A DNA stretch of 64,000 nt from Schmidtea polychroa. Taxonomy: Eukaryota. The notes under the pieces were generated by a model, which was given only the letters and a program-made list of their open reading frames with translations, did not search any database and had not been told where the DNA came from. The stretch lies in NCBI GenBank assembly GCA_044892525.1, contig CM097886.1, positions 28,396,001 to 28,460,000 on the forward strand, read 5' to 3'. This document shows, in pieces, positions 35,785 through 60,680 of the stretch. Both the position numbers and the translations under genes were made by a program. The stretch's first letter is position 1; each line of letters starts with the position of its first letter.

Positions 35785-36417
35785 CATTACATAACTTCCC
35801 CCTTTAAAACCGGAGGTTAACATGAATCAATAAAAAGTGAAAGTAATAACATTGTTACAATAACCATTTTTTTAATTTTTCTTTGTATGTTTTATGGATC
35901 TGGTACCGGATCCATGAGTGGATGTACGAGGATACGGTACCAGTACAGCCAAAAATAGAGCCCTACAACAAACTGTGGAAGGAGGCTCTGATGCGCGCCC
36001 TCGAAGAAGGACGACTGCATCGGATCTAAAATAAGATCCTGAAGAGCGAACTCGAAGACCCGGACGGAACCGCCCGACTACTTTGCAGTGAGGATAGGCT
36101 TGCCTATGATGGATTTTGTTTGTTTGAGTGGCTTCGAATTAAGGTATGATAAGGAAATGAGATCCGGGAGCACAAACTAAAAGAGATGGACCAGGAAAAT
36201 CGGACGTAGGCCTTCTGTTGGCAGTCCGTGGACCCAAGGGAGTACGGGACAGTTATAGTATACAGAGTATACTCACTTTCTGCTAGTACTCCAACCCTTG
36301 ATACATTACCAAAGTTGATCACTCAACGGGTATCAAGTGGTCAAACTTCAATTGTATTCTGGGTTACGCTGGAAACAGCACGATGAGGTAAAATGTTTGA
36401 TTACCTTAAACCCGCCA
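35785..36417 (+). mobile_element. 3' fragment of a third LTR subfamily (C)
   Basis: 36195-36417 aligns with 42630-42862 and ends AAACCCGCCA; CATTACATAACTTCCCCCT resembles the motif near 40755-40773; 5' end not found. Confidence 0.65.
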
Positions 36418-39104
36418 TTTGACAAATAAAATTATAAAAAAGAACGACATTTTGCAAAAGTTACTTTTAGTGAATCAAATTTTAAAATTTAATCGAGAGT
36501 TGTTTTTTATAAAAGTTTTTTTTTGTGAATTTTTACTGTTTTGGCTTTCAGTTTGTTCGTAATAAATGTAACTTGCAAACTTTAATTTAGAATTATATAT
36601 CTAATTTTACTTCGTTCAAATAAAAAGACATTAAAGAACTCCCACTTTTTACTTGTTTTTATTTCAACAGAGTGAGGCAAGATAAGTAAAGCAGTAAGAA
36701 GAATTTAGTTATCACCTGAAAGAACCAGATTTGTATGAGCGGATAAAATGCTTTTCTAAACTCAACCAACATTTAATAGTGAAAAGTAAATCTTTTTGTA
36801 TTACAGTGCTGGCGTGTGATTTAGATTGAAAAGGAGCTAGAAATTGACTTCAGTTAAATTCAAAAAGTTTGAGATCTTCTCAGTTGATTTCAAAAATGAT
36901 CATTTTAGTCGTGAGGCTTCTGGACCATCAGAGAATAGAAGAAATTCACCGGGCATGATTGAGAGTAAAACGACTATCATGTCTTAACAACCCGTGTGAG
37001 CACCATCAGCGTTACCGAAAAGATAAATTATTATTTTTTTAAATCTCTGTAATGAAAGGTATAAACAAGAATAAACCTAAGGTATAAACCTAAGGACTTT
37101 CCATTGCATAAAACTTTTTGTTAGACACTTATTCTAACAATATACACTCCTCCACGAAAAACTTAGACTTTTCCGCCATGAATTCAATTATTTAATTTTT
37201 AATTAATTTTATGTTCAATAAACCGTTTCATGGAAATCCGATTCTTTATAAATTCAAAGATCTTCTGGAACTTTTAAATATTGGTAAATTCGAGAGTTTT
37301 TTTTTGTTCATCTCTGATTTATCTTTGTTTTCCTCTAAAATTTCTTCTTATCTACATTTCGACAATAGATCGTTGTTTCAATTGTTAAAATATTTAAATA
37401 ACACTTGATAAGGGCAGTGCCGAAAATTTGAAATAAATAAGAAAAAAAATGAAGATAATCGGAATTCAAAAGTTAATACTTGACAATTTTTAAATGTTTC
37501 GAGTGTTGGGCTAGAACTGATTTCTAGACCCAAAGTTGGGAATGGGACGAAATGTGTCAGTACACAACACGCATACCCAGCATTAAGTTTACTTAAATAA
37601 AAATATATAAAACACCAAGTAAACAATGATAATAGAGAGATAATATACCCAAAAATAAAACATCTGAATTAAAAATAAAATAAAACACGAGCAAGAAGTA
37701 TTACACGAAAACTTACTCAAATATAACCGAAAGACATAAAACAACAAAAAACAAATTCGAATAAAGGCGATTAGTAAAAATTAAAAAAAAAAAATTAAAG
37801 AAAATCTTCATAAAATCTTACGTAAAGAAAATTATATCGATATTTTGAATAAAAATCCAGAACAATTCATAAAAATGGCGAAATCCATCATGACGGCCAA
37901 ACGACCCAATAAAATTTATAAAAAATAAATATTTTAGTTTAAAAAATAAATATTTTAGAAAAGAAATCATAAAAAACAATTTAAAAATAAGAAATAGATT
38001 GAATTTAGCATGGACTGTTCTGGAAATGCTGAAATCCATCATGGAGGCAAATTTAATAAAAAATAATTCGAAAATAAAATTTCAAAAATAAAAACAAAAA
38101 TTCTTACTGAAAAATCGCCATCAAAATCGATAAAAATTAAAAATCGAATGTTCGAGAATTAAAATAATCTGAATTTGTTTTACTGCATCAATGCACGCAT
38201 GTATACTTACACGTCAAACAGAGGCTATATAAACTAACACATTTCGTCACTTTTTAAGCAAAGAAAAAAAAATGCAAATGAATATTTTTACTCTTATGCC
38301 AAATTTTTGGTTTTGATTTTTCTGAGATTGTAGGTAAGGACGATTTCATTGTGAATTATAAATTATTATTATTGAAACCTTGTTTTCATTATTTCTTTTT
38401 AACTATAGAAATGTAGGTTTGAGTGAGATCGTCGGTTATCATTGATTTTGAAGCGAGATCCCAGTCAACCCTGCACCTATGCACTTCATCATCGATGAGT
38501 AAACAGCCCACAATGATCGCAGGCCACTGCCTGGCACGCACTTATCAATATTATTGGTTTTTTTTGTTCAGGTCATTCGGAGGTCGCACCACTTCATGGT
38601 TCTGCCATGGAGTTAAGTCGATGAAATCCTCCGTCTGACTCTACCTATTTATTATAGGTCAGCCGTAAAGGGTTGACTTACCACACAACAGTAAGGTTTG
38701 TCGTAGTGGTCACAGTGGGGCCGCGAAAGCAAACACTCTTCCCGACTTTCAATACATGAATAACTTACATAGTTAAAATCTACATCCAAAATCATCACAA
38801 TACAATACACTAAGGTTAATAAACAGAGTAGATCTCAGACCTAAATTAATCACAACTCTACAACTCACAATTAATGTAGACGGTTAAATATCATCAAAAA
38901 CCAACTCTACCTATACGTTTGTCGAATCTAGATTTATAAATGTCCTAAATAAATTTTCTAGTAATAATGTAAAGTAAAGATTTTTTTCTAAATGATTGAT
39001 TTAGTAGCGATAGTATTCATAAAGGTGTTCGACATGCGTATCGGCAAGACTTGGATTTTAAATTGAATAGACTCTGAACTAACTATAAAAATACAAATCG
39101 TAAA

Positions 39105-40010
39105 CCCATAAAAGTATAAATTATCATCTCAATTGCATAAAAATATGAATTATACTTATAGATTTAATTTCTTCAAAATATAAATTATGATTAGTTATAA
39201 AGGTATAAATTACAAATTTAATTTTTCAAAAATATAAATTACAAGTTTATATTGACTGTAAAATTATAAATTATAACTCTAAGTTAATTACAAAAGTATA
39301 AATTATAATCCTAATTTCATAAAAATATAAATTATAATTAGTTATAAAAGTATAAATTATAAATTTAATTTCCTGAAAATATAAATTACAAATTTACATT
39401 GACTATAAATTATAAATTATAACTCTAAGTTAATTACAAAAGTATAAATTATAATCCTAATTTCATAAAAATATAAATTATAAATTATAACTCTAAGTTG
39501 ATTGTAAAAGTATAAATTATAATCTTAATTTCTTCAAAATATAAATCATGATCTTAAAAGTATAAATTATAAAATTATATTAGCTACAAAATATAAACTA
39601 TAAATTTACCTTAACTTCATAAAAATATAAATCATAAACTTAAAAATATAACTTATAAAATTATATTAGCTTTAGAAATATAAACTATAAATTGAACTTC
39701 ACCAAATATAAATTATACACTTAAAAAAAAAAAATAAATTATAAAATTATATTAGCTTTAAAATATAAACCATAAAATTAGCTTCATAAAAATATAAATT
39801 ATAAACTTAAAAATACAAATTATAAAATTATATTAGCTTTGGGAATATAAACTATAAATTGAACTTCACCAAATATAAATTATAAACTTAAAAGTATAAA
39901 TTATAAAATTATATCAGTTCTAAAATATAAACTATAAATTTAACTTCATAAAAATATAAATTATAAAATTATATTAGCTTTAAAATATAAACTATAAATT
40001 TAACTTAACT
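39105..40010. repeat. Degenerate AT-rich tandem array inside the LTR (copy at ~54658-55563)
   Basis: Repeated AAAATATAAATTATA / AAAAGTATAAATTATA / TTATATTAGCTTT modules. Confidence 0.85.
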
Positions 40011-40346
40011 TAGATTGCCTTTAACATCATAGTTGAAAATTTTTCATCAAAGACCCCCCATAAACCATATAGTCATCAACTACCACCTAAATATACTAAA
40101 TTAGCTTATCTTAATATATATTTAACTTATATTATATTTTAAAATATAAATTGAAAATTTTCATAAATGACCCCCCTTCAAATTATGTAGCCATTAACTA
40201 TTCCTTAGGTATACTGAATTGTATCATCTTCGTATAGAGTCAAATTATATTTCAAACCAAAAAAAAAAAAAAAAATAATAATTCCATAAATTTTCGTAAA
40301 TGATCCCCCCCCCATATGTAGTAATCTTATAAAAATATAAATTTAC

Positions 40347-40377
<31 letters not shown>

Positions 40378-41177
40378 GTTATTATTATTATTATTATTAT
40401 TATTAGCATTGTTACCAGTAACATTATCACTCTTACTATTATTATTACTATTATCATTATTATTATTATATTATTAAAATAATTATCTTTATTTCATAAA
40501 AATAAAATTATAAAACAAATTATTGATTTTGGGATTCCCCTATCTCTAAATTTAGTTTCAATGGCCCTATCTTCCAATAAAATTACGGAAAATCACTAAA
40601 ATCTATTTTTAGTAACACCCCCCCCCTGAAAACGACATCAATATTATTAATTTAAATTATATCCATATATGTATATATGTGTGGGTGTATATGTATGTGT
40701 ATATATAAGTGGATGTGTGTATGTACATACCGATTTATAAAACAACCTTATAACCATACGATAACCTTCCCCCTCAAGACCCCTGTTATGTAATGGTCAC
40801 AACCCCTTTAAGGTGATGGAACGAGGATAGAGTAGTTTACTGAAGTAATTTAGTAGAATCATTTATTAATTTATTAAAATTATTGGATTTATTTTTAACT
40901 AGATCAAAAGAAGAAAAAGAAAAACAAAGACTAAGTTTATTGATTTCGATCATCAAATTTATTCACATAATTGTTTCTTTGAATCATATTCATACCAAAA
41001 AGTCCTTCGAGCTCAGTTGATGGACCATCCCGATGAAATACATTTCCTGGGGTTGGAAAATGGAAAACTTATATTAAAATATCTTTCAGAATTTCTTTTA
41101 GATTTCCACAATTAAATAATTCCAAATTATTTCTCACAAATATATTCGATCAAAAAGAATTTTAATATTTTATTTAA

Positions 41178-41846
41178 TTACAACATCCTGAATTTATTTC
41201 TTTGCTTGGCTGCTTTAAGATCATAAATGGGCATTTTTCATTTATTAATCGGATAAGATCAGTTTTTCTGTACAACCTTTACATTCTTCACCCCAGCTTT
41301 CTAATATTTTTTGAGATCTTTAACGCGAGCTTTGTTTAGATTAATACCAGTAAGATCAATAGGTTTGTCTGAAAAATAGTTGAATTAATATTTAAAATCT
41401 TAACTGAACATACCATATTTTAATTCACCAATTTGTGCATCAATTGCTTTTAGTTTTTCAGACTTTTTCAGCGGGCATAACCCAACTCAAAGGCCGAGAC
41501 AAATGTTTTACAATATATGCAGTAGATGTTACCAATCCTCCAATATAATAACACTAAAAATAAATTACAATTTTATAGTAATCAGTTATAATACCTTACC
41601 AGACTTTATTCTTTTCCTTTACTTGTTTTGCTCATCTTTTTGAATTTATTTTCAATATTTTCGATATTTGTACTTTCATCTCCATCTAGACTATCTTTCA
41701 GGCGTCTCACAAACTTAACACAAACTGAACAATTTTTAAATATAATAAAAATAAGTGCCAAATACCTTCGCAATTATTTTCATTAACTGTAGCTGACATT
41801 ACATAGTAAACAATGATTAGAAAAGAAAAACTGATAAAATTTTCAT
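41178..41846 (-). pseudogene. MANF: Captured MANF/ARMET gene copy, 4 exons, disabled (in 5' LTR)
   Basis: Reconstructed MKILSVFLFLIIVYYVMSATVNENNCEVCVKFVRRLKDSL...[38 protein letters not shown](C)[66 protein letters not shown]; GT-AG introns 41725-41765, 41554-41599, 41369-41413; one nonsense codon, a 2-bp deletion and several 1-bp homopolymer deletions. Confidence 0.92.
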
Positions 41847-42870
41847 TGCAAAATATTACTAATATAAAAAAAAATGGTTTGTTAAAAAAAAATAATTAGT
41901 TAAAACAAGTTTAAAATACTTCAAACTGACGTATAAGTTTTGTTTAAAATGTAAGTAACGAGTATTGTAAAATTAATTTAATATTATTATAAATTTTGAA
42001 TTAAAATTTTCTTAAAATTCTAGAAAAAAAAAAATCTATTATTAATAGAAAACAAATTTTTAAAAATAAATAAAGTTTGAGTCAATTTGAATTTTCTAGA
42101 AGTATCTCTTAAAATTATATAGGGAATTGTTTTGTAACAGTTATTGATGTATTTTGAATTTATTTAACTTGAATTAAAAATATAATATTAACAAAAATGT
42201 ATTGTGAGATTTTGATTGTTGATCTAACCATCTCTCTATAACTACCCGGGCTCAACAAAGGGGAGTGTCATTGTAGGTCAACTAGGACAGTCATAGTCAC
42301 CGCGAAATACGCTTAGTCAAATAATACGCGGTCATAAACAATCATGGTTCTTGTAAAGTTATTATATTTTGTTGTTGTGGTTGGTGAAATTTCTGACCCT
42401 TATTTGTATGTTCACTAATATATAAGTTGTTTGTTTTTTGATTATTTTCTAATTAAATTCATTATTCCCAAAAATTTCTTAAGGTATGTTTAATAAACTT
42501 TGGCTATGTTTCACTTAATTTGTGGTATTGTATGAACAGGTTTTAATGGATTAATGTATGATTCCTGATGACTTATGATCGTTTGAGGATAGAAAGTTTG
42601 TATAGGCATAGTTGAGAAAGTAATTATAATAAGGGACCTGCGTAAATCGGACATATATCTTCTAACGATAGTCCGTGAACCCCGTAGAGTGCTCGACAAT
42701 TACAGTGCAAGTAGTGCGCTCACTTTTTGCGAGCACTCACCCTCTTGATACAGTACCAACGTTGATCATTCAACGGGTATCAAGCGGTAAACAATGTTGT
42801 ATCTTGGGTTACGCTGGTAACAGCACTAAAGAGCAAAATATTTGATCATCAGTAACCCACCATACAAATT

Positions 42871-42888
42871 TGGGGGCTCAGCCGGGAT
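42871..42888 (+). promoter_or_regulatory. Primer-binding site, tRNA-Pro-like
   Basis: TGGGGGCTCAGCCGGGAT, 16/18 match to the canonical TGGGGGCTCGTCCGGGAT, 8 nt after the LTR end. Confidence 0.85.
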
Positions 42889-43749
42889 ATTTAAACTTTC
42901 TTGGTAAAGAACCTGTAAGTAGACGGGAATGCATAGCAGTTTTTTGATCAGGAAATGAAATGCTTTATGCAAGAGTAAGAAAGATTGTTTTCTCAAATAA
43001 CTAGACATGATGTGTGAATATGCGTGTATGATCAAAATGAATGTTGAATGTTGTACATGATGAATAAAATGTTTTAAATTATGTAAATATAGAAAATCGA
43101 TAAAACTGGGTATGAGAATAATGTATGAGCGTTCCGTGTTGATGGGACAGAATGTTGATGGGTAAGAAATGAAATAAAAATCAAAAATAAAAAAAATTGT
43201 AAATATAAACAACTAATACTTTGGATATAAGAAAATAATAAAAAATTCAAAAATAGGGAAAAGGGGGGGATAGAAAATAGCGGTATATAGAAAAAGGGGA
43301 TAAAGCATAAAACAGTGAATTGCGAAATAGAAATAGATAGGTGATGCAATTAATTAAAAATAGGGGGAAGATGTAAAAATAAGTTAAAGATTAAAGGGTT
43401 ATATTGAGTACTTGATCAAATGACTAAAATTATGGACACGCTGGGATCAAAAGGGTTACGTAGACTAAGATAATAAACTAGAGGGAACGGATAAAAATGT
43501 GCGGAACATCATTTAATGGATTGGGAGCCTAAACTAACAGGGTAAAACAGCTATTGAACTTACTTAATTTGAATAAGGAAATAAATGGGTAGAGGTAAGC
43601 TAATTAAAGGGGAATAAGAACACTTAATAAAATGCTGAATTAATAAAGTATAACTTGATGGAATTAACCGGCTACATTATAAAGAAACTTGAAAATTCGT
43701 AAATTTAACTAACAACTCACTACAAAGATTGAATTGAAAAGCAGAGCAG

Positions 43750-44161
43750 TTGGCAAACATCCAAGAAGGACTGATCTTAAAACCAAGACCAGTTGATGAT
43801 GAATTGTGTATAATGACGAGAATTGCTACACCAAATGTGGAATTAACTACTCAAAGAGTATATCAGATTCAGAATTTACGTTTAGATAAGGCCAAATTTA
43901 ACATCAAATGGCAAGAATTAAAGATAAAAATTTAAACGGTTGAAGATGCGATAAGAGAGGCGATCGATAATGAGTTCAAATGTTGTGTGTGTAGAAGCAA
44001 TGAGATAAAAATAATGATGGTACATTGCGGACATCGATGTTATTACCAAGATTATGCATTGAAACTGAAACCATTGTAATGTATGTGATGCAAACGTGAG
44101 AGAAAGAGTAGTAGTGTACCTCCCTAAGGGAGATGTAGAAAAATTAAAGATGATGAAATGA
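43750..44161 (+). pseudogene. Decayed RING-finger (C3HC4, IAP/MDM/neuralized-like spacing) ORF
   Basis: In-frame continuation past TAA at 43933 gives CCVCRSNEIKIMMVHCGHRCYYQDYALKLKP, then after a 1-nt frameshift CNVCDANVRERVVVYLP; two expected Cys are TAC/TAT. Confidence 0.75.
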
Positions 44162-44878
44162 ATTGCTGCTGAGTGTGAGTTAGTAAAAAGTTAGTAAAAC
44201 TAATTCCATAATAGCAACCGAAAGGTATAAAACATACGTTGAACATAGACATATGAAATACACAAAAGCCGTTAAATAAATAGACAAGCAACACACAAAT
44301 TAAATTGGCGAAAGCCGTGAATTAAATACAGGACTGGCTGGGATCGCATCAAGTGTGAGTTGATCTATAAGATCAGTACGATTACCATTTTTTTTCCTGT
44401 TTTTGTTTTATTATTTTTGGCATAGAGAGACAGGACCATAAGGGGATGAGAAGCATATCGTCCCTACGATGCTTACACGGATGGGGAAATCCTGATCACC
44501 TTGATGAGAAGAGTATAATTGGGCCCATCGCAAATGTTGGAGAGTTTCTGTCGAGTGACTGATCACCACTTGTGGGAAATGAACCAACGCGATTATTATA
44601 TTTTTTGAATTTGGGAGACTAGGACAAACTAGAAGGGTAAATAAAAAGAAAAAGATAAAAATAAAAATTGAAAATGTGCACCAAAAGATTAAAAATTAAC
44701 ATTATCCGAGAGCAGCTGCGGATTTGAAGAAACCGTTTTTGGACTTCAAATCGGATGAGGAGTACTCATTGATATGAATTTTTCCCTAGCGAGTGATGAG
44801 GCACCCGAGTACAGCGGCTAACCACCGGACTGTAGTGTCCAGGAGATTATCAGCCAAGGGACTGATGATGCTGGATCA

Positions 44879-45450
44879 CCCAATACAAAAACCCGGATAC
44901 CACACCGAGTATTGGGCGCACTTTTTTGAGTTGCTAGCGGGACTTGATACAAAAACCCGGAAGGGTAGCGAGCGAGAGAGACCCAGTTACCTACACCGAG
45001 TATTAAGGAGCCCAGTGAAACGGTTGTGAGATGCGGGTCAACCGGTAAAGGACTCGTACTCAACAGGCAACCAAGATTGGACCAGTTGTGAGGCGGAGGA
45101 CCGAAAGTCAACTGCATATCCAATTTCCTTTTATCTTCACTAGTCGGGAGATCTGGTTCATCACTTTTGAGAATCAGGATCGAGGCGATTAGATATTTCC
45201 GTGTTTTTTAAATCCTGATAGATAGGATGTTTTTTCTTCGTGATTATTGCTAGCAGGGGTCGGTACAAAACCCGGATGCCCACACCGAGTACCGATAGGC
45301 CCAGTGAAACGGCAATGAGATTAGAGTTACCGGTATTAGGCTCTTTTCAATAGGCGGCCAAGAATTGAGCCAGTTGTGAGGCCTCAGCAGATTAGGAATT
45401 TGAGTAGGAGGAGCCTTGAATTTTTAATTGGTCCGAAAGTCAACTGTCAA
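44879..45450 (+). other. Repeated structured-RNA-like modules in the 5' leader
   Basis: Three copies of stem-AAAA(A)CCCGG..ACACCGA-stem with different but complementary closing stems; two copies each of CCCAGTGAAACGG..ACCGGTA and CAGTTGTGAGGC..CCGAAAGTCAACTG. Confidence 0.6.
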
Positions 45451-45560
45451 CTCAATTTAATCGCGGTAGGGACGATAGTAGGTGTAAAAACCGAAAGCGT
45501 CGAGGGGTTGAAGAAACCTCATTTAGGGCATTTGAAACCGGTCAGGGACCGAAGACCGCG

Positions 45561-45880
45561 AATATGGCGTAATGGTGTAAAAGCCCAGACGTCGAGGAGT
45601 CGTAAAAGACTTCAGATTATGATTAAACCGGCCGGAAGCCGATGCCAACGTAGAGGTCTAACAAACCAAAGCGTTGATGGGTAATAATGGATAATATGGC
45701 GTAATGGTGTAAAAGCCCAGGCGTCGAGGAGTCGTAAAAGACTTCAAATTATGATTAAACCGGCCGGAAGCCGATGCCGACGTGGAGGTCTAACAAACCA
45801 AAGCGTTGATGGGTAATAATGGATTATATGGCGTAACGGTGTAAAAGCCCAGGAGTCGAGGAGTCGTAAAAGACTTCATG
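45561..45880 (+). repeat. ~2.4 tandem copies of a 132-bp unit
   Basis: ATATGGCGTAA recurs in units starting at 45561, 45693 and 45825. Confidence 0.9.
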
Positions 45881-46842
45881 GGATTAAAATGAGTTGATTA
45901 AACCGGCCAGAGAGCCGATGGTAATTGAGTGAAATGATTTAAATGAAATAAGAGAGTTAATTAAACCGGCCAGGGAGCCGATGGTAAATAAATGTAGACG
46001 CAGAGATCGCGCGAACCAAAGCATCGATGATTAACTATAAACAAACGATTAAGATGAAATTGATTAAATTGAATAGATTAAGTGCGACAAAGATGTAATG
46101 AGTAAAGGAAAATTATGATAGAGCGCCGGCGCAAGAGAAACTGAAGCCAAATTTTTGAATGGGGAAAAGCGAATGAGGAGACATTAATTAAGTTACTGAT
46201 GAGTTTTATATGTATATGACTAATGATATATATTTTCAATTATATAATTGATGTTGTGATTATATGATAGATAATTGATACGACGATATAGATAATTGAT
46301 ACGAGTTATAGATAATTAAAAATGGACTTAAATTCAAAGGGGGTGAGTAGCAAAAAGTAAAAGCGTACCATGAATTAGAAAAGGAACAGCGAGAGAAATA
46401 ATGAGTAAAGAGTAGTATAAAATAAAGAAAATAGGGAAATAAATGAAGGGTAGGATAAAATGAATAAAATATTATGATATGTACTAGGAGTGTTAATTAT
46501 TTTAGAATAAGTCAATCAATAAGTCAGAAGGAAGTCAATACAAGCCAAGAATTCAAGAGAAATAAAGAGAAATCAAAAATTCAAAAGAAATCAAATAAGG
46601 AATCAAGAGAATCAAACGAGGATAAAAGAAAGCTAAACAAAGTCAAATTAAATAACAAGAGGAAAATTAAAGCGTTGGCCAACGAAACACAGTGAAATTC
46701 AAAAGGGATTATTAAAGCAAGAAAAATTGATAATAAAGCCAATCGAACGAGATCGCCGAGCAAAGGAGGCTCTAGTTTATTAGGAAACGCAGGGAGACAA
46801 AGAGCCAAGAGAAACAGAAGAATCAATAAGAAACCAGCGTCA

Positions 46843-48573
46843 GTGAAAACATTATTTGAATCAGACAGCTTAACCAACGAAAGTGAAAACAGCGACGATA
46901 TTAAAAGAAACGAATTATATCCGGTAACTGATATCAAACCAACAGACAAGGAAGATAGTAGTTCAGGCATAACAAGTTTGTGTCGAGATATAATGTTAGA
47001 CGGAAACCAAGTGAACAACCCGAATGGGTCAGAGTCGACATACACACCCGAGATAAACCATGTCAACGTCAATGTTGGAGAATTTAGAGAAAGATTTCGA
47101 GGAGAACCATTCGATGGGAATATTAATGAACTAGAAACGTTTATAAAAGAATTCGAGGTATATATTACGATATGTCACTGGCCAGACATAGTCGTACGAG
47201 AGCGAATACCATTATATTTAAGAGGAAGTGCACAAGATGTATATTTAGAGGCAAAGTGTGATGCAACAAAACTAAAAACATGGAAATCAATAAAGAATTT
47301 TTTAATAAAAACATTCGGTAGCAAAAGGGAAGTAAATCGCAAAATGTTGGATTTTCTGCATCGAAAGCAGAAATACAATGAGTCAAACGCACTATATGCA
47401 TGTGAATTAAGACGACTGGCAAAAGAAGCATTCGATTCAAATCAAACAGTTCCGGAAGACAAGATAATAGCCGTATTCGTAGAGGGTATGAAAAGAAAGG
47501 ACATACGAGCAACAGTGGGTTGCCGAGCACCAGACACGCTCGAGGAAGCATTAAAAATCGCTAATAAATGTGAAAACTACTTGACTCCAGTACAAGTAGC
47601 AGCAATGGCAGCAGTACCAATAGCTACAACACCAACAACGACAACCGAAATTAATCAAACCAACAATGAAAATCTAGGAATGAATCAATTTATCTCAGAA
47701 TCGCAACAGTTGTTCAAGGCGCCAAAAACGACAAATCCAGATAACAGAGGTAATATTCAATTTTACACTAATAATTTCAGGAGCAACGAGAACAATAATC
47801 AGAAGTGTAACATATGTCAACGACTAGGACATTGGAGCAACGAGTGTTATAAGACAAGGATGTGCCAAAATTGCGGTAAAAGGGGGCACACAGAAAATAT
47901 ATGCCGAGGACCAATGATGTCGATGAGAGGAGGAAGGACTAGAACCTGCTACAGTTGCAACCAACTTGGACATGTGGCGAGAGAATGCGCAATGAGGACA
48001 AAACATAATCAACCAAGAGCAAACGATCCAAGTCAAAATATACAAGTCAACATCATGCAGGAAATTGAACAGTTGAAAAAGATGATCCAACGGATACCAG
48101 AGGATATCCAAAAACGACCAACAAGAGAACAACAAGATCAGCAACGAATCGAGGGGCAGAGACCACTAAACGAAAAAGCCAGAGAAATTCAAAAAAAATG
48201 GAAAAAGCGAGAAACCAACACCGGAAGAATAAATATGATGAGATTAATGAACAAAGGGGAACCGCACACTGCGGAGCAGTGTGTTAACAAGGAAGGGAGC
48301 GATATGACCGTAATCAACGAGACAAAAGTGATAAAAGAAAATGGGTCACATCAATTGACGGAGCAATTGACAGAACTGAGTAGCGAGGATAAAATAAAAA
48401 TAATACAAGGGTTCACCAAAGAAGAAAAAGAAAAGAGACGAAGAAGAGATGAAACAGGCACGAACCAAAAAGCAACGAGATTGTTACAAAGAATCGAATT
48501 CAGAGGGTATTACTACAAAAAATTGAAGATAGAATTAGAAGAGAAGAACCAAATTTTACGGATGAGCAAGTAA
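46843..48573 (+). CDS. gag: Retrotransposon Gag with three CCHC zinc knuckles
   Basis: Capsid-like PFDGNINELETFIKEFE..W..IPLYLRGSAQDVY; knuckles CNICQRLGHWSNEC, CQNCGKRGHTENIC, CYSCNQLGHVAREC. Track start is GTG; first ATG near 46993; the frame is open back to a TGA at 46693. Confidence 0.92.
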   Translation: MKTLFESDSLTNESENSDDIKRNELYPVTDIKPTDKEDSSSGITSLCRDIMLDGNQVNNPNGSESTYTPEINHVNVNVGEFRERFRGEPFDGNINELETFIKEFEVYITICHWPDIVVRERIPLYLRGSAQDVYLEAKCDATKLKTWKSIKNFLIKTFGSKREVNRKMLDFLHRKQKYNESNALYACELRRLAKEAFDSNQTVPEDKIIAVFVEGMKRKDIRATVGCRAPDTLEEALKIANKCENYLTPVQVAAMAAVPIATTPTTTTEINQTNNENLGMNQFISESQQLFKAPKTTNPDNRGNIQFYTNNFRSNENNNQKCNICQRLGHWSNECYKTRMCQNCGKRGHTENICRGPMMSMRGGRTRTCYSCNQLGHVARECAMRTKHNQPRANDPSQNIQVNIMQEIEQLKKMIQRIPEDIQKRPTREQQDQQRIEGQRPLNEKAREIQKKWKKRETNTGRINMMRLMNKGEPHTAEQCVNKEGSDMTVINETKVIKENGSHQLTEQLTELSSEDKIKIIQGFTKEEKEKRRRRDETGTNQKATRLLQRIEFRGYYYKKLKIELEEKNQILRMSK

Positions 48574-48653
48574 AAGAAAAAGTAAAAGACAACTGATTCA
48601 GGAAAAATGAGTGGTTCGAAAAGAAAGAACCAAGTAACAGAGCCAATATAAAC

Positions 48654-51392
48654 ATGCTGAGACAAATACAGAATGATCAGGCGGACCAGGAAGACGAGAA
48701 AAGTGCGGTGAGTAGCCTGAGAAGTGAATTATTTCAATCAAGTGATGAAAATAATGAACAAGGAACACCTCAAAATAACGAAGAGGGTGAGAGCGACGAT
48801 ATGGAATCACCGATAGAAACTGACGATGAGGAAATATTTGAGGAAATTTCCGACACGGTATCGGAAAGAGAACGAAATGAGAGCTATATCAACGAACCAA
48901 CATACAGAAAATGTATAAAACTGATAACTGAAGCATACCAGTGGGAAGGAGGTATATTAACGGCAACATGGAAAGATTTGGTGACGAAATATAAAGGAAA
49001 ATTGAAAGAAGTCGAGCCAGATCAATGCCGGGTGAGTATTCAACACCCCGAAACTCAGATGCAGATTACTGAATTAAAAGTAACAAATATTGATGAACTG
49101 TATATTTGGGTACAGGAAAAGAATAAACAGCTATACGACAATTGTTATAAAGTTAAAATGAGCATACATCTAGTAGATATGATGAGATGGCCAAACGAAG
49201 TTAATATCTTAATCTTAAAGAAAAACAGAGACAGCGAATCAGTAACGGAAATACTGAGGAAAATCCAACAGATATTCAACAATGAAGTGGAACCAGAAAT
49301 AGAAAAGACTGAACAAAAGATAATGAAGGAAAATCAAATAATCGTAGTAAAACAAGCAATCGATCAAGCGAAGAAATATATTAACAGATTTAGGGAAAGA
49401 TGGCCGCAGCTAATGAAACAGTTTGTCAAAGACGTACGGGATACTGAGATTATGGGATTTGAATATAAACGAGCAACGGAGTTGATATCAAAATATGGTG
49501 AATACGAGAGAATCAGATGTGAACAAGAATTACCATGGCCATCCAACAGAAAAGTGACAATAGTAAGAGAATCACTGAAGAATAGTCATTTAAATAAACA
49601 CGAAGAAATGATCAAAACATCACATGTCGAAGACGACATTTTTGGAAAAGGCCGGAGTGGAAAAAATGACAAAGACCATAACGACAAAAATGAGGAAGAC
49701 GACGGGAACCATGAAAGGAACAACATAAATGGGAACTCAAACGAACGAGATAATGAAGAAGACAAGGAGTCAGAAGATGACGACGAAGACTTGAAGGATA
49801 CTGAGGACAACTCAGACCAAAGTGAAGACAACCAACATAATGAAACAGAGAACGACAAACGAAAGTCCCCACTGCATAACATAGTAATGCGGAAGAATCT
49901 AAACCAGTCACTCCTACTACAAATTATCCTAATAATACTAACGTCAATTTGCCTAACAGAAACGAAAAATACGCGAATTACGAGAGGAAATCTGAAAGAA
50001 GGCGAACTATTCATGATAAAAGTCAGCGGCAACAACGGAAACGCGGTCGGGATATGCATCCAATTGATGGAAGGAACCGGAGTAAGTTGTGATTTTAGAA
50101 CGATAACAAAAGGGAGGATTTTCAATAGTCAAAATGTAGAACCTGAATTATGCGGAGACTACAACATTTGCGAAGACATAACATCAGAAGAAAAAGAATT
50201 GGAAAGAGCTAACGAAACCGGAGTACATGTCGCAATTAAAGCTACAATGGAAGGTATCGAAATAATAGATAAAGGAAATTTGCCAACAACGCAAATATGT
50301 TTTAGAGATGACGAAGACATATGTATAACGGTGGACATGAAACGAGATCGCGAATTTTTTTGGACAAACGTAAAACCAAACACCAACATGGTGGTATGCG
50401 CAGGTACCCAGGCAATAGTGGTATGTAAAGCAGTTAAAACCGCGCAAATAAAAAGCAGGCCAAAAAGTATGGCTAGTAAACGATATCAACCAAGGATCAA
50501 ACCGGCAATTAAGAAACGCCAGAAACAATCCCGTAGGGGAATGATAAGAGGACAGCACCAAACCAAGAAAAACAAAACAGTAATATGGATCAAAGATGAG
50601 AGACGAGAAGTACTAGTAAATGTCGAATTCAACAAGAAAAGAGAAGAAGTAATCACGGTCAGAAACCAAGGTGAAGAACCAATAGTAAGAGTATGTGTAC
50701 TAAACAGGACAGGAATAGTCGACTGCATAGAAACACTACTTGACAAAGGTGCAGAAGTTAAAATGACAATAGGAGAAAGAAAGGGACGATATCACATATG
50801 CGTTCTTAAAAACGGAAGCGATTTAAGTTCATGCCAAGCAATAACCAGACAACGACCACGGATGATAAACATACTATTGACAACCAGAAAACCAAAAGAA
50901 GTGGAAAAGCCAAAAGGAAACGAACATCTAACGGCAGAAGAAACGAAACAGTTATACCAGATGCTCAAGAAAAATAAAACACAAGAGGCAACTACAACAG
51001 AAACTAAAATGATGATAACGACAGGAAAATTCAACGAGACACTGATAACCGTTAAAATGATGTGGATCGCTAGCGCAATAATGAGTGTAGTGATAGCATC
51101 AATAATAATCCAATGGATAAGAACCTCCAAAATATGTAAACAAAAACCTAAAGGCAGAAAAAGATGGCCACAAGTGGAGAATTCCGAATATGGTATTCCA
51201 ACAGAAAACCCGAATCCAGAAGAGTACGAAGCGATTGAAGATCCAAGGTCAAGCAGACTATGGACGCAAGAATTACTCAGAATACAAACCCTAAACGATT
51301 GGGTAAACGAATTTGACATATACCGGCTAACGGATGAAAGATATGGGGGGATGCGCACATTGCATTCAGGTCCCCTGGCAACAATGGTATAA
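48654..51392 (+). CDS. 912-aa ORF2: acidic N-terminal half plus type-I membrane glycoprotein (Env-like) module
   Basis: Signal-peptide-like MRKNLNQSLLLQIILIILTSICLT from ATG 49887; Cys-paired beta-rich ectodomain with six N-x-S/T sequons; TM MMWIASAIMSVVIASIIIQWI; tail with YxxI motifs; no RT, RNase H or integrase motifs. Confidence 0.75.
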   Translation: MLRQIQNDQADQEDEKSAVSSLRSELFQSSDENNEQGTPQNNEEGESDDMESPIETDDEEIFEEISDTVSERERNESYINEPTYRKCIKLITEAYQWEGGILTATWKDLVTKYKGKLKEVEPDQCRVSIQHPETQMQITELKVTNIDELYIWVQEKNKQLYDNCYKVKMSIHLVDMMRWPNEVNILILKKNRDSESVTEILRKIQQIFNNEVEPEIEKTEQKIMKENQIIVVKQAIDQAKKYINRFRERWPQLMKQFVKDVRDTEIMGFEYKRATELISKYGEYERIRCEQELPWPSNRKVTIVRESLKNSHLNKHEEMIKTSHVEDDIFGKGRSGKNDKDHNDKNEEDDGNHERNNINGNSNERDNEEDKESEDDDEDLKDTEDNSDQSEDNQHNETENDKRKSPLHNIVMRKNLNQSLLLQIILIILTSICLTETKNTRITRGNLKEGELFMIKVSGNNGNAVGICIQLMEGTGVSCDFRTITKGRIFNSQNVEPELCGDYNICEDITSEEKELERANETGVHVAIKATMEGIEIIDKGNLPTTQICFRDDEDICITVDMKRDREFFWTNVKPNTNMVVCAGTQAIVVCKAVKTAQIKSRPKSMASKRYQPRIKPAIKKRQKQSRRGMIRGQHQTKKNKTVIWIKDERREVLVNVEFNKKREEVITVRNQGEEPIVRVCVLNRTGIVDCIETLLDKGAEVKMTIGERKGRYHICVLKNGSDLSSCQAITRQRPRMINILLTTRKPKEVEKPKGNEHLTAEETKQLYQMLKKNKTQEATTTETKMMITTGKFNETLITVKMMWIASAIMSVVIASIIIQWIRTSKICKQKPKGRKRWPQVENSEYGIPTENPNPEEYEAIEDPRSSRLWTQELLRIQTLNDWVNEFDIYRLTDERYGGMRTLHSGPLATMV

Positions 51393-51747
51393 GAAAGTGA
51401 TGAGTCGATGTAAATAGTGTGTATATAAACGTGAGGGTAAAAGTAGTTTAGTAGATTAGTAATATGTTCAAAAAAAAAGGTACAAAAAAATGGGTAGGAT
51501 AACTACGTATTATGAATGAATCAGAGAAACGAGGATCAAGTATATCAAACGAGGATACCACATGTTGTTGAATTGGGAAATCAACCACTAGTAAACATTA
51601 ATCAGACATAAATAGTAGAAATTGATACAAGTACAACGATAAACCAACCAAGTTAGTCAGCAGGATCAATGTGAAGAACACAACGTGAATTAATGACAAA
51701 TGACAAACCATACCCAAGAATATCGGTTACGTAATTAGAATGCGTTA

Positions 51748-52524
51748 ATGGAGAGCATCAATAGAAACTCGATATACATAACAAGAATAAAAGAGCAACA
51801 ACAAATAATCGCACAATTAGAATACAATAACAAACAGTTGATAAGCCAAATAAAATGGGAGGCAGGTGAAATCAGGAGATTACACGAAAACGTTCTGCAT
51901 GATGATATCACGAGTTTAGTTGAGTGGATAACCGGCCTACCAGGAACTGGGGAACCGGACTCAACGGGAGAGACCTAAAAGAAGGGGAAAGTAGCCCTGT
52001 AAACAAACGAAATTATAGCCAAAGTAGAAGCTCCGAGATTAAACGCTATCATGGCAGAATGCCGAGGGAAAGTGGAGAGAAGTGGAGGAACAAAACTATT
52101 ATTTATGAGCAGATAAGAAAAATTAGGTCAAGTCATAGATTATGACATGGAGGTACCACACGACTTGTAACAAGAAAAGCAGAAGTTAAAGAGAGAACCA
52201 CCGCAAGAATCAGCCACATCCCAGATGACAATAATAATAAAATTCTTAGAAGAAATAATGCAGCGAACAATGATGACTGTCAACGAATGTCCGAGAAACT
52301 ATGAAACAAAGACGCTCGAAGAAATAAAGGAAAGGGTAAATAACGCAATCAAAGAAAAGCCAATTACTCAAGATGAAATAATAAGAACATTGAGAGAGAT
52401 ATAGATGGGAATAATAACAACTATGAACAAAATCCCGATGAACCATGAGACAACGACCAAAACTTTAGAAGGAATAAAGAGGAGAATATCAACTACCTTC
52501 AAATCTATCAAATCTATCTTCTAA
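51748..52524 (+). pseudogene. Fragmented third ORF, coiled-coil-like
   Basis: Protein-like pieces (IKEQQQIIAQLEYNNKQL..., TLEEIKERVNNAIKEK...) broken by stops and frameshifts. Confidence 0.35.
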
Positions 52525-53057
52525 AATCTTCAAATCTAGAGCCGTCATCGAGATGAGATCCCAAACAACCGAGTGTATAAATCCTGATATAAACCGACAA
52601 TGATCCTGATATAATCTGACAACGATCTTGAGTTGATTGAAAATGTTCTTATTATGTGTTGACAATGATCCTGATTCGATTGACAATGATCTGAAAATGA
52701 TCTAAATTTGATTTAACAATGATCCTGACATGATTCGACAATGATATGATTTGACTATTATTGTGATTTGATGCCAATATTATATATTACTTTGATATTA
52801 TTTGAGCATAACAATTGGATTAAATTTTGTGTGGACCGACCGTGGTCTTCTTTCTCTTCATCTTTAAACCAATCTGTAGCATGTAGCGTATCAGTAGAAA
52901 CTTTTTATGTATGTGGGTATTGAGGTCACGACCCTGTAGCTCGTGGACCCAATTACATGTAGGCACTTGTAATAAAGTGCAACCAATTCTGTCTAATTAT
53001 ATCTTGAACTGTTGATTAAATTGCGGGTCGCAATTTTATGGGCCCCCGAGTGTTTTA

Positions 53058-55899
53058 TGTTGGGCTAGAACTGATTTCTAGACCCAAAGTTGGGAATGGG
53101 ACGAAATGTGTCAGTACACAACACGCATACCCAGCATTAAGTTTACTTAAATAAAAATATATAAAACACCAAGTAAACAATGATAATAGAGAGATAATAT
53201 ACCCAAAAATAAAACATCTGAATTAAAAATAAAATAAAACACGAGCAAGAAGTATTACACGAAAACTTACTCAAATATAACCGAAAGACATAAAACAACA
53301 AAAAACAAATTCGAATAAAGGCGATTAGTAAAAATTAAAAAAAAAAAATTAAAGAAAATCTTCATAAAATCTTACGTAAAGAAAATTATATCGATATTTT
53401 GAATAAAAATCCAGAACAATTCATAAAAATGGCGAAATCCATCATGACGGCCAAACGACCCAATAAAATTTATAAAAAATAAATATTTTAGTTTAAAAAA
53501 TAAATATTTTAGAAAAGAAATCATAAAAAACAATTTAAAAATAAGAAATAGATTGAATTTAGCATGGACTGTTCTGGAAATGCTGAAATCCATCATGGAG
53601 GCAAATTTAATAAAAAATAATTCGAAAATAAAATTTCAAAAATAAAAACAAAAATTCTTACTGAAAAATCGCCATCAAAATCGATAAAAATTAAAAATCG
53701 AATGTTCGAGAATTAAAATAATCTGAATTTGTTTTACTGCATCAATGCACGCATGTATACTTACACGTCAAACAGAGGCTATATAAACTAACACATTTCG
53801 TCACTTTTTAAGCAAAGAAAAAAAAATGCAAATGAATATTTTTACTCTTATGCCAAATTTTTGGTTTTGATTTTTCTGAGATTGTAGGTAAGGACGATTT
53901 CATTGTGAATTATAAATTATTATTATTGAAACCTTGTTTTCATTATTTCTTTTTAACTATAGAAATGTAGGTTTGAGTGAGATCGTCGGTTATCATTGAT
54001 TTTGAAGCGAGATCCCAGTCAACCCTGCACCTATGCACTTCATCATCGATGAGTAAACAGCCCACAATGATCGCAGGCCACTGCCTGGCACGCACTTATC
54101 AATATTATTGGTTTTTTTTGTTCAGGTCATTCGGAGGTCGCACCACTTCATGGTTCTGCCATGGAGTTAAGTCGATGAAATCCTCCGTCTGACTCTACCT
54201 ATTTATTATAGGTCAGCCGTAAAGGGTTGACTTACCACACAACAGTAAGGTTTGTCGTAGTGGTCACAGTGGGCCGCGAAAGCAAACACTCTTCCCGACT
54301 TTCAATACATGAATAACTTACATAGTTAAAATCTACATCCAAAATCATCACAATACAATACACTAAGGTTAATAAACAGAGTAGATCTCAGACCTAAATT
54401 AATCACAACTCTACAACTCACAATTAATGTAGACGGTTAAATATCATCAAAAACCAACTCTACCTATACGTTTGTCGAATCTAGATTTATAAATGTCCTA
54501 AATAAATTTTCTAGTAATAATGTAAAGTAAAGATTTTTTTCTAAATGATTGATTTAGTAGCGATAGTATTCATAAAGGTGTTCGACATGCGTATCGGCAA
54601 GACTTGGATTTTAAATTGAATAGACTCTGAACTAACTATAAAAATACAAATCGTAAACCCATAAAAGTATAAATTATCATCTCAATTGCATAAAAATATG
54701 AATTATACTTATAGATTTAATTTCTTCAAAATATAAATTATGATTAGTTATAAAGGTATAAATTACAAATTTAATTTTTCAAAAATATAAATTACAAGTT
54801 TATATTGACTGTAAAATTATAAATTATAACTCTAAGTTAATTACAAAAGTATAAATTATAATCCTAATTTCATAAAAATATAAATTATAATTAGTTATAA
54901 AAGTATAAATTATAAATTTAATTTCCTGAAAATATAAATTACAAATTTACATTGACTATAAATTATAAATTATAACTCTAAGTTAATTACAAAAGTATAA
55001 ATTATAATCCTAATTTCATAAAAATATAAATTATAAATTATAACTCTAAGTTGATTGTAAAAGTATAAATTATAATCTTAATTTCTTCAAAATATAAATC
55101 ATGATCTTAAAAGTATAAATTATAAAATTATATTAGCTACAAAATATAAACTATAAATTTACCTTAACTTCATAAAAATATAAATCATAAACTTAAAAAT
55201 ATAACTTATAAAATTATATTAGCTTTAGAAATATAAACTATAAATTGAACTTCACCAAATATAAATTATACACTTAAAAAAAAAAAATAAATTATAAAAT
55301 TATATTAGCTTTAAAATATAAACCATAAAATTAGCTTCATAAAAATATAAATTATAAACTTAAAAATACAAATTATAAAATTATATTAGCTTTGGGAATA
55401 TAAACTATAAATTGAACTTCACCAAATATAAATTATAAACTTAAAAGTATAAATTATAAAATTATATCAGTTCTAAAATATAAACTATAAATTTAACTTC
55501 ATAAAAATATAAATTATAAAATTATATTAGCTTTAAAATATAAACTATAAATTTAACTTAACTTAGATTGCCTTTAACATCATAGTTGAAAATTTTTCAT
55601 CAAAGACCCCCCATAAACCATATAGTCATCAACTACCACCTAAATATACTAAATTAGCTTATCTTAATATATATTTAACTTATATTATATTTTAAAATAT
55701 AAATTGAAAATTTTCATAAATGACCCCCCTTCAAATTATGTAGCCATTAACTATTCCTTAGGTATACTGAATTGTATCATCTTCGTATAGAGTCAAATTA
55801 TATTTCAAACCAAAAAAAAAAAAAAAAATAATAATTCCATAAATTTTCGTAAATGATCCCCCCCCCATATGTAGTAATCTTATAAAAATATAAATTTAC

Positions 55900-55933
<34 letters not shown>

Positions 55934-58418
55934 GTTATTATTATTATTATTATTATTATTAGCATTGTTACCAGTAACATTATCACTCTTACTATTATTA
56001 TTACTATTATCATTATTATTATTATATTATTAAAATAATTATCTTTATTTCATAAAAATAAAATTATAAAACAAATTATTGATTTTGGGATTCCCCTATC
56101 TCTAAATTTAGTTTCAATGGCCCTATCTTCCAATAAAATTACGGAAAATCACTAAAATCTATTTTTAGTAACACCCCCCCCCTGAAAACGACATCAATAT
56201 TATTAATTTAAATTATATCCATATATGTATATATGTGTGGGTGTATATGTATGTGTATATATAAGTGGATGTGTGTATGTACATACCGATTTATAAAACA
56301 ACCTTATAACCATACGATAACCTTCCCCCTCAAGACCCCTGTTATGTAATGGTCACAACCCCTTTAAGGTGATGGAACGAGGATAGAGTAGTTTACTGAA
56401 GTAATTTAGTAGAATCATTTATTAATTTATTAAAATTATTGGATTTATTTTTAACTAGATCAAAAGAAGAAAAAGAAAAACAAAGACTAAGTTTATTGAT
56501 TTCGATCATCAAATTTATTCACATAATTGTTTCTTTGAATCATATTCATACCAAAAAGTCCTTCGAGCTCAGTTGATGGACCATCCCGATGAAATACATT
56601 TCCTGGGGTTGGAAAATGGAAAACTTATATTAAAATATCTTTCAGAATTTCTTTTAGATTTCCACAATTAAATAATTCCAAATTATTTCTCACAAATATA
56701 TTCGATCAAAAAGAATTTTAATATTTTATTTAATTACAACATCCTGAATTTATTTCTTTGCTTGGCTGCTTTAAGATCATAAATGGGCATTTTTCATTTA
56801 TTAATCGGATAAGATCAGTTTTTCTGTACAACCTTTACATTCTTCACCCCAGCTTTCTAATATTTTTTGAGATCTTTAACGCGAGCTTTGTTTAGATTAA
56901 TACCAGTAAGATCAATAGGTTTGTCTGAAAAATAGTTGAATTAATATTTAAAATCTTAACTGAACATACCATATTTTAATTCACCAATTTGTGCATCAAT
57001 TGCTTTTAGTTTTTCAGACTTTTTCAGCGGGCATAACCCAACTCAAAGGCCGAGACAAATGTTTTACAATATATGCAGTAGATGTTACCAATCCTCCAAT
57101 ATAATAACACTAAAAATAAATTACAATTTTATAGTAATCAGTTATAATACCTTACCAGACTTTATTCTTTTCCTTTACTTGTTTTGCTCATCTTTTTGAA
57201 TTTATTTTCAATATTTTCGATATTTGTACTTTCATCTCCATCTAGACTATCTTTCAGGCGTCTCACAAACTTAACACAAACTGAACAATTTTTAAATATA
57301 ATAAAAATAAGTGCCAAATACCTTCGCAATTATTTTCATTAACTGTAGCTGACATTACATAGTAAACAATGATTAGAAAAGAAAAACTGATAAAATTTTC
57401 ATTGCAAAATATTACTAATATAAAAAAAAATGGTTTGTTAAAAAAAAATAATTAGTTAAAACAAGTTTAAAATACTTCAAACTGACGTATAAGTTTTGTT
57501 TAAAATGTAAGTAACGAGTATTGTAAAATTAATTTAATATTATTATAAATTTTGAATTAAAATTTTCTTAAAATTCTAGAAAAAAAAAAATCTATTATTA
57601 ATAGAAAACAAATTTTTAAAAATAAATAAAGTTTGAGTCAATTTGAATTTTCTAGAAGTATCTCTTAAAATTATATAGGGAATTGTTTTGTAACAGTTAT
57701 TGATGTATTTTGAATTTATTTAACTTGAATTAAAAATATAATATTAACAAAAATGTATTGTGAGATTTTGATTGTTGATCTAACCATCTCTCTATAACTA
57801 CCCGGGCTCAACAAAGGGGAGTGTCATTGTAGGTCAACTAGGACAGTCATAGTCACCGCGAAATACGCTTAGTCAAATAATACGCGGTCATAAACAATCA
57901 TGGTTCTTGTAAAGTTATTATATTTTGTTGTTGTGGTTGGTGAAATTTCTGACCCTTATTTGTATGTTCACTAATATATAAGTTGTTTGTTTTTTGATTA
58001 TTTTCTAATTAAATTCATTATTCCCAAAAATTTCTTAAGGTATGTTTAATAAACTTTGGCTATGTTTCACTTAATTTGTGGTATTGTATGAACAGGTTTT
58101 AATGGATTAATGTATGATTCCTGATGACTTATGATCGTTTGAGGATAGAAAGTTTGTATAGGCATAGTTGAGAAAGTAATTATAATAAGGGACCTGCGTA
58201 AATCGGACATATATCTTCTAACGATAGTCCGTGAACCCCGTAGAGTGCTCGACAATTACAGTGCAAGTAGTGCGCTCACTTTTTGCGAGCACTCACCCTC
58301 TTGATACAGTACCAACGTTGATCATTCAACGGGTATCAAGCGGTAAACAATGTTGTATCTTGGGTTACGCTGGTAACAGCACTAAAGAGCAAAATATTTG
58401 ATCATCAGTAACCCACCA
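53058..58418 (+). repeat. 3' LTR (5361 bp)
   Basis: Near-identical to 37504-42862; followed by TSD CGAG. Confidence 0.95.
56734..57402 (-). pseudogene. MANF: Captured MANF/ARMET gene copy (in 3' LTR)
   Basis: Same sequence and lesions as 41178-41846. Confidence 0.92.
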
Positions 58419-58630
58419 CGAGTTACGACAAAGACATGATTATAAAATGATGATTGATGCATGAAAATAATTAAATTTAATTAAAAATAATTTATTAATT
58501 AAAATATTTCATCTTATTTGAATATAATTTCAAAAAGACTTCTGAAAGTAATTACGATAATATTCACTCATCAGAATTGCTAGTGTACCCCTAAATTTTA
58601 TTCAAATTAATAAAACTTGACAGTTTTTAT

Positions 58631-59272: not shown

Positions 59273-60680
59273 TGTATGATTTCAAAAATCTAGAGAAAAC
59301 AATATAATTGATTAATTCAATAATTAGGAGAGAAGTTTCTAACTTGCAAAAGAAAAATAATGAATAACATTACTTCAGCCTATCAAATTTGAAATTTCCT
59401 CATCCTCAATTCCATGGGAGAAGAAAAACAAATTTATTCAATATGTTTGGCATTCTGTAAAACTATGATGGGCTCACGGCATAAAGGATAAAAAGAAAAC
59501 GGGTTTGAAAAAAATAACTTAGGTCAAGTGGATTCAAGTTAACTTTTATCTGGAACAAATTTGGCAGTAAATAATTTTATTAAATGCAATTTGAAATTAA
59601 TCACCCCATTTTACTTCTGTTTTATTTTTATGGTTGTTTTTTGTTGGTTATTTAGACATTTCAAATAATTTCATTATTAATTTAATTTAATTAACTTATT
59701 AAAAAAATTAAAAAAACTAGTAAACAAATAAAAAAAATTAAACTAACAAAATAAATAGCAATAATTTTCATATTTATACTAAAACATTTTTTCTTTAATA
59801 AAAGTATTATTTATTATGATTTTACATTTATATTTATATTGGTTATCGATATTGACGGATATTATTATTGTTATTGGTATGATTTGAGTCAGAAACATTT
59901 TGGTTGAGATTATTACAATTATTNNNNNNNNNNNNNNNNNNNNNNNNNNNNNNNNNNNNNNNNNNNNNNNNNNNNNNNNNNNNNNNNNNNNNNNNNNNNN
60001 NNNNNNNNNNNNNNNNNNNNNNNNNNNNNNNNNNNNNNNNNNNNNNNNNNNNNNNNNNNNNNNNNNNNNNNNNNNNNNNNNNNNNNNNNNNNNNNNNNNN
60101 NNNNNNNNNNNNNNNNNNNNNNNNNNNNNTATTATTATATATCAGTATGTTTGTGGTATGTTGAAATTATAGAATTAGTTTGCTCTGAATATTATTTATA
60201 TTTAGATAAATTCTCCACATATTAAAAAATTGTTTTTGTTTCAATAATATATTTTGGAAACGGCTTATAAAGTAAAATCTTCTTTTAATATGGTCTTTGC
60301 GTGGTCATCATATACAATTTCAATGTACCACAAACATACGGATATATAATAATATTTTAAATACATCTTACAATTATTATTATTAGTATTATTTGGTAAT
60401 TTTTAAAATCTGACAGACTTGCCTGTATTTTTTATTTATAATACATTTTAGTTTATTATCATTATTAATGGAATGTTTTTAACGTCGATTGTTACGTTAT
60501 CAAAAACTTTGGCTAGTGTTAAAATTAATAAAATTTAGATTGATTTAAAATTTTTTCAAATTTCATTTTCAAAAATCAAATGAAAATTATTCAAAGAGAA
60601 TATGATATGAAAAATTAATTAAAATCTGATTGCTAGAGTCTTATCAACATTTCAGATAAAAAGACAAATTAGTTGACCCA

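Follow-up and report, generated by a model that had tools for sequence, protein, structure and literature searches.

The question raised by the locus described here is how a long terminal repeat (LTR) retrotransposon that keeps structural genes and encodes no enzymes of its own could have been copied and inserted into a planarian genome. The locus lies in a stretch of 64,000 nucleotides of Schmidtea polychroa DNA (GenBank assembly GCA_044892525.1, contig CM097886.1, positions 28,396,001 to 28,460,000 of the forward strand), which was analyzed as a whole and is termed the window; all coordinates given below are positions within it. The element is a 20.9-kb LTR retrotransposon that was inserted very recently, and half of its length is LTR, as an initial annotation of this DNA had noted. 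It is probably a non-autonomous element of the Ty3/gypsy type, from the Burro-like lineage of planarians, that has entirely lost pol, the region for protease (PR), reverse transcriptase (RT), RNase H (RH) and integrase (IN), and dependence on helper Pol in trans is the most likely explanation for its mobility.

The element is bounded by a pair of direct LTRs on the forward strand, the 5′ copy at 37504–42862 (5359 bp, non-coding) and the 3′ copy at 53058–58418 (5361 bp). A self-BLASTN comparison of the window returned these as its sole long non-satellite repeat pair, with 99.925% identity over 5362 columns. In a global alignment the LTRs differed by no substitutions and by two indel events, a single base in a run of G and one TTA repeat unit in a microsatellite, both non-coding. 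Each LTR starts with TGTTGGG and ends with ACCCACCA, and thus has the TG..CA ends, as well as the short inverted termini (TGTTGGGCTA and TAACCCACCA), that are expected of Ty3/gypsy elements. The tetranucleotide CGAG flanks the element at 37500–37503 and again at 58419–58422, in keeping with the 4–6 bp target-site duplications of Ty3/gypsy elements. A primer binding site (PBS)-like 18-mer beginning with TGG was located on the forward strand at 42871–42888, 8 nt past the 5′ LTR; it occurs once in the window, against a chance expectation of 0, and no tRNA gene matching it was found within the window. The TG..CA ends, the CGAG duplication, the PBS-like site and the absence of LTR substitutions bear out the initial description of the element as a recent insertion of the integrase type. 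The virtually identical LTRs mark the lineage as one that was active very recently, a point of relevance to planarian genome instability and to PIWI-interacting RNA (piRNA) biology.

The 5′ LTR contains an AT-rich tandem array of the 29-bp type (39175–40003) and a (TTA)n microsatellite (40349–40476). A search of Rfam gave nothing at the gathering score, and two sub-threshold mir-297 matches in the AT-rich LTR repeats were treated as chance. At the far end of the internal region, the junction with the 3′ LTR (52960–53057) was observed to run through a GGGCCCCC motif rather than a polypurine tract.

The internal region between the LTRs (42863–53057, 10.2 kb) has an A-rich sense strand with an excess of G over C throughout, and pol was sought there by several routes. 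When 161 fetched proteins were compared with the window by tblastn, the pol-bearing probes matched through their Gag parts alone, and a phmmer --max search against the full set of 1289 stop-free pieces from the six-frame translation of the window likewise gave matches confined to the Gag parts of these probes. Pfam analysis of 19 small stop-free pieces of the internal region, taken from both strands, returned a partial RING finger alone. The pol-bearing probes were drawn from a representative protein search with Gag and comprised a complete Gag-PR-RT-RH-IN polyprotein (P0030) and two proteins in which Gag precedes a retroviral protease (P0161) or an integrase zinc finger (P0019). The initial annotation had stated that no protease, RT, RNase H or integrase is encoded, and tblastn, phmmer and Pfam all agree with it; within the reach of the probes no pol domain was found between 42.9 and 53.0 kb, where that annotation had said that such domains would refute it. 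P0161 and P0019 are among the closest Gag relatives (52–57% identical), and since they carry pol domains after Gag, pol-bearing cousins of the element exist.

The first of the two genes that remain, gag, is located at 46561–48573 on the forward strand and encodes an N-terminal extension, a capsid core, three CCHC zinc knuckles (each C-X2-C-X4-H-X4-C) and a basic/acidic tail. Pfam recognized the knuckles as zf-CCHC (E 3e-11), while the Ty3_capsid profile scored 28.9 bits, 0.2 under its cut-off of 29.1; the relatives of this Gag pass the Retrotrans_gag profile. An AF2 model built with 60 relatives reached a predicted local distance difference test score (pLDDT) of 78, and its best Foldseek matches in the PDB were the capsids of dArc1, Arc, PNMA2 and Ty3. 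The protein is a two-lobed capsid of the Ty3/Arc type joined to a CCHC nucleocapsid, as is characteristic of Ty3/gypsy elements. Its close relatives are 50–57% identical to it and include proteins with RING (P0014), MATH (P0018), protease (P0161) and integrase (P0019) modules; their UniParc numbers fall within one narrow range, which suggests that they stem from the gene set of a single genome. In exact-protein look-ups, two further relatives, P0021 and P0030, were found solely on short ENA metagenome contigs, and no record was returned for P0001, P0018, P0019, the product of the second gene or the kinesin encoded beyond the element. Searches of viral contig and metagenome contig collections with Gag, the Gag alignment and the product of the second gene gave no relatives. 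Separately, a 1205-bp metagenome contig (L001, ENA ERZ2271643) was observed to be 73% identical in DNA to window positions 46087–47318 and to encode a protein 75% identical to the N-terminal region of Gag; it therefore represents a sister family in another sample or organism.

The second gene, open reading frame 2 (ORF2; 48471–51392, forward strand), is shifted to the -1 frame with respect to gag. Its homology to P0018 can be traced from 48471, still within the end of the gag ORF, and crosses one in-frame stop, while the long frame has its first ATG at 48654 and runs for 912 codons. Residues 1–288 are 44% identical to residues 95–387 of P0018 and are followed by an acidic linker, whereas P0018 extends into a MATH/TRAF domain beyond the ORF2-like part; the N-terminal third of the ORF2 protein is a known accessory module of the Burro-like lineage. 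Residues 278–303 weakly resemble, in collinear order, the central part of the P0018 MATH domain (pairwise E 0.007). The phmmer match was non-significant, and a MATH remnant in ORF2 was retained as no more than a weak hint.

The remaining part of the ORF2 protein, residues 411–912 (49884–51392, forward strand), is of a different character. It was delimited by its sequence features: Met411, a signal-peptide-like segment (residues 419–436), an ectodomain of ~365 residues with 12 cysteines and six N-X-S/T sequons, a predicted transmembrane helix (residues 800–822) and a tail of 90 residues. ORF2 has two hydrophobic segments, and a very basic stretch is present at residues ~600–650. On these features, the C-terminal ~500 residues resemble a membrane glycoprotein of type I. 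No homologue of residues 420–912 was found among 5.8 billion proteins; residues 411–912 gave no sequence match in the PDB and no Pfam match, Env families included, up to E 10, and a furin-type R-X-K/R-R motif is absent from the module. A single-sequence AF2 model of residues 411–912 was mostly beta, with no long heptad-type helices, and was dropped for fold comparison on account of its pLDDT of 37.8. A possible internal repeat in the ectodomain, suggested by spaced cysteine pairs, was also rejected: the local alignment score equalled the shuffle mean and self-BLASTP was empty.

The openness of the two genes stands out against the composition of the DNA, with no stops in gag where 43 are expected and none in ORF2 where 65 are expected (P ~1e-19 and ~1e-29, respectively). 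On either side of them the internal region is decayed. The ~3.7-kb leader (42863–46560, forward strand) has stops at the density expected at random in all three frames, and so has the 1.67-kb 3′ part (51393–53057, forward strand), in which no open frame and no domain match was found. The leader carries a decayed remnant of a RING-finger ORF (43699–44076, forward strand), which is truncated and gives a partial match to zf-C3HC4_3; it aligns with the RING region at the N-terminus of P0014 at ~29% identity, with two in-frame stops within the alignment. A stretch of the leader at 44.2–46.2 kb has a GC content of 39–46%, compared with ~25% for the genome, and shows no coding signal; at 45561–45878 a 132-bp unit is repeated in tandem (2.4 copies, 96%), and the question arises whether this GC-rich stretch serves as a packaging or regulatory RNA. 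As the LTRs have accumulated no substitutions, the decay of the RING ORF and the saturation of the leader and the 3′ region with stops must predate the insertion. With gag and ORF2 alone open and the other parts decayed earlier, the RNA from which this copy was made already came from a greatly changed element, yet it was copied.

The simplest interpretation of these data is that the element moved with borrowed enzymes. Its RNA would have been transcribed from the 5′ LTR and then packaged, probably into particles in which the element's Gag is combined with Gag-Pol from a complete relative. Reverse transcription by the helper enzymes would then have started at the PBS, and integration by the same enzymes could have given rise to the 4-bp duplication.

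The likely lineage of the element is suggested by the Burro elements, giant Ty3/gypsy elements of Schmidtea mediterranea with a Gag that carries three CCHC knuckles, a RING-type motif and MATH_TRAF_C (PMC6431247). An env-like region in these elements stands in frame ahead of PR-dUTPase-RT-RH-IN, and their accessory domains (RING-type, MATH_TRAF_C, BIR, BCL2 and ankyrin) are host-like; Burro1 is the same element as GYPSM1, and the family is credited in the review to Grohme et al. 2018 (PMC6431247). The element shares with Burro the three CCHC knuckles of Gag and the placement of its membrane-protein module, in frame after the accessory modules at the position of the Burro env-like region. RING and MATH/TRAF modules occur in its close relatives P0014 and P0018, while the element itself keeps a decayed RING remnant and a non-significant trace of MATH. 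The initial annotation had named neither this lineage nor the RING remnant, and had not recognized the N-terminal third of the ORF2 protein as an accessory module. An AT-rich host and large LTRs with tandem repeats are also common to both. The window has a GC content of ~25%, which fits the >70% A/T of the S. mediterranea genome (PMC11410931), and an LTR length of 5.36 kb falls inside the range known for Ogre elements (PMC6431247). The element differs from Burro in that PR, dUTPase, RT, RH and IN are missing, in that its internal region measures 10.2 kb where that of Burro reaches up to 25 kb, in reading gag and ORF2 from different frames where Burro has a single giant ORF, and in having no detectable MATH, BIR, BCL2 or ankyrin domain.

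Further LTRs of the same family were found in the window. The 3′ end of one of them, inverted, 95.8% identical and cut by the end of the window, lies at 63329–64000 on the reverse strand, and it abuts the first 32 nt of a third LTR on the forward strand (63297–63328; 31/32 match); the arrangement at 63297–64000 is a nested insertion, in which one copy landed inside the LTR of another. Older LTR fragments at 24416–24651, 33568–34242 and 36188–36418 are 76–81% identical to the ends of the element's LTRs. In one of them the terminal 32-mer (34209–34240) is conserved at 31 of 32 positions while the remainder of the copy is 76–78% identical, a pattern consistent with selection to preserve a common end for recognition by integrase. 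The family had initially been annotated as multi-copy on account of the LTR at 63329. That LTR copy is real, but it does not make the pol-less form itself multi-copy, because LTRs of this kind could also belong to an autonomous partner.

Several observations weigh against the reading of the element as a helper-dependent, pol-deleted member of the Burro-like lineage. The 100 nt that precede position 53058 contain no purine run, and the absence of a polypurine tract beside the 3′ LTR leaves plus-strand priming without explanation. Comparison with relatives revealed that the N-terminal extension of Gag contains one in-frame stop, its capsid–nucleocapsid core being free of interruptions, and that one more lies in the part with homology to P0018 that precedes the first ATG of ORF2; these stops make it uncertain that the two genes are expressed as they are in the relatives. 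The initial description of the element as intact therefore needs qualification: both ORFs are open, but the two stops do not fit it. The nearest pol-linked Gag is just ~54% identical to that of the element, an autonomous partner matching it in LTR ends or PBS was not identified, no collection of eukaryotic genomes having been searched for one, and the assignment to a Burro-like lineage was made by way of the review's domain inventory rather than by sequence comparison (PMC6431247). Finally, no second full copy of the pol-less form was found in the window, which otherwise holds LTR fragments only, and a propagating family is consequently not established.

The main rival, which agrees with this last point but is somewhat unlikely, is a one-off defective copy: an autonomous member of the family would have lost pol in a single deletion, either by template switching in the last cycle of reverse transcription or by loss after integration, with no helper-dependent family behind it. 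A single full copy with no second internal region in the window is in keeping with this, and identical LTRs are compatible with it because a single deletion needs no time; the weak match between ORF2 residues 278–303 and the MATH domain of P0018 also hints at internal deletions in the lineage. However, nothing pol-like is left on either side of the presumed deletion, and the fully decayed 3′ region and leader imply a long non-coding history, although an autonomous parent could have shared that decay. That the whole structure is an artefact of assembly or a segmental duplication, rather than a transposon, appears extremely improbable. A collapsed or duplicated assembly could yield two substitution-free repeats of 5.36 kb; it would not be expected to supply an exact 4-bp target-site duplication, TG..CA ends, a PBS-like site in the expected place and a correctly oriented gag, and at least three further LTR fragments in the window terminate at exactly the same bases as the LTRs of the element. 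The shared termini identify the repeats as true LTRs of a multi-copy LTR family and not as an assembly duplication.

The nature of the membrane-protein module can be weighed in a similar way. The initial annotation had proposed a possible envelope, and the signal-peptide-like segment, transmembrane helix, cysteines and sequons are consistent with one; a match to an Env family, a furin-type site and any homologue are what is missing from that picture. The alternative, in itself unlikely, is that the C-terminal module of ORF2 is a captured host membrane-protein gene or arose de novo, with a role other than that of an envelope, for example in modulation of the host cell, a role proposed for other accessory domains of Burro. 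The failure to match any Env family, the PDB or any of the proteins searched, the lack of an R-X-K/R-R motif and the mostly beta, low-confidence model without long heptad-type helices would all suit such an origin, and Burro is known for host-like accessory domains (PMC6431247). On the other side, a host homologue was likewise not found in the protein search, and the module occupies the position given for the env-like region of Burro, following the accessory modules in the same frame (PMC6431247). For this module, capture or de novo origin of a membrane protein is considered about as likely as an envelope. A stronger version of the helper-dependent reading, under which the element represents a stable planarian satellite lineage with its own Gag and an ORF2 surface glycoprotein of an undescribed fusion or attachment class, parasitizing the enzymes alone of a Burro-type helper while gag and ORF2 are held under family-level selection, is distinctly unlikely.

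Elements that keep structural genes and lack pol have precedents. Replication-defective, helper-dependent proviruses and deletion variants of endogenous retroviruses are LTR-bounded, are missing pol and retain structural genes, as does the element; they belong to the Retroviridae, however, whereas the element is of the Ty3/gypsy type and its second gene is not a recognizable env. The Env proteins of the Errantivirus/baculovirus-F type have a pattern of signal peptide, ectodomain with cysteines and sequons, and C-terminal transmembrane segment that also appears to be present in ORF2 as judged from its sequence, but ORF2 differs in having no Env homology (Pfam to E 10, PDB and protein database) and no furin-type site. 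Large retrotransposon derivatives (LARDs) are likewise large, non-autonomous and pol-less, with long LTRs; they are non-coding, whereas the element has two long ORFs. In function the element resembles the defective proviruses and also TR-GAG and other ‘semi-autonomous’ plant elements, in which Gag is retained and Pol is presumed to come from an autonomous element (PMC13570524); by descent it looks like a relative of Burro that has lost pol. LTRs, a PBS (PBS-like here), an open gag and the lack of enzymatic domains are common to TR-GAG and the element (PMC13570524), which differs in its animal host, its length of 20.9 kb, its 5.4-kb LTRs and its second long ORF.

The element is accordingly regarded here as a known kind of defective element, of which the orphan module of ORF2, and the possible satellite lineage of Gag plus surface protein, are worth following. 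Should the pol-less form prove to propagate as a family, the plant TR-GAG elements would have an animal equivalent within the unusual Burro lineage, giant planarian retroelements would be seen to spawn parasites that retain structural genes, and the orphan membrane protein of ORF2 would be a candidate for a new class of surface protein. If pol was instead lost in a single deletion from this copy alone, the element is an ordinary defective insertion.

The surroundings of the element appear to be heterochromatin rich in transposable elements. A 79-bp satellite of ~70 copies (27565–33155; ~13% GC), with a higher-order periodicity of 158/237 bp, ends 4 kb from the element. Runs of N, amounting to 675 bases in total, are present at 8272–8402, 9776–9916, 13726–13922 and 59924–60129. 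A unit of ~678 bp is repeated in three tandem copies with >99% identity at 14360–16405, just upstream of an ORF of 901 codons (17279–19984, forward strand) that lies on an A-rich strand and has no Pfam or PDB match. This ORF was considered as a relative of ORF2 and was rejected, the two being unrelated on comparison; it may be the ORF of another mobile element. Beyond the 3′ LTR, an uninterrupted ORF of 641 codons (60681–62606, forward strand) encodes a C-terminal motor of the kinesin-14 type (Kinesin and Microtub_bd), with KIFC3, Ncd and Kar3 as its top PDB matches; it is a host gene without introns or else a retrocopy.

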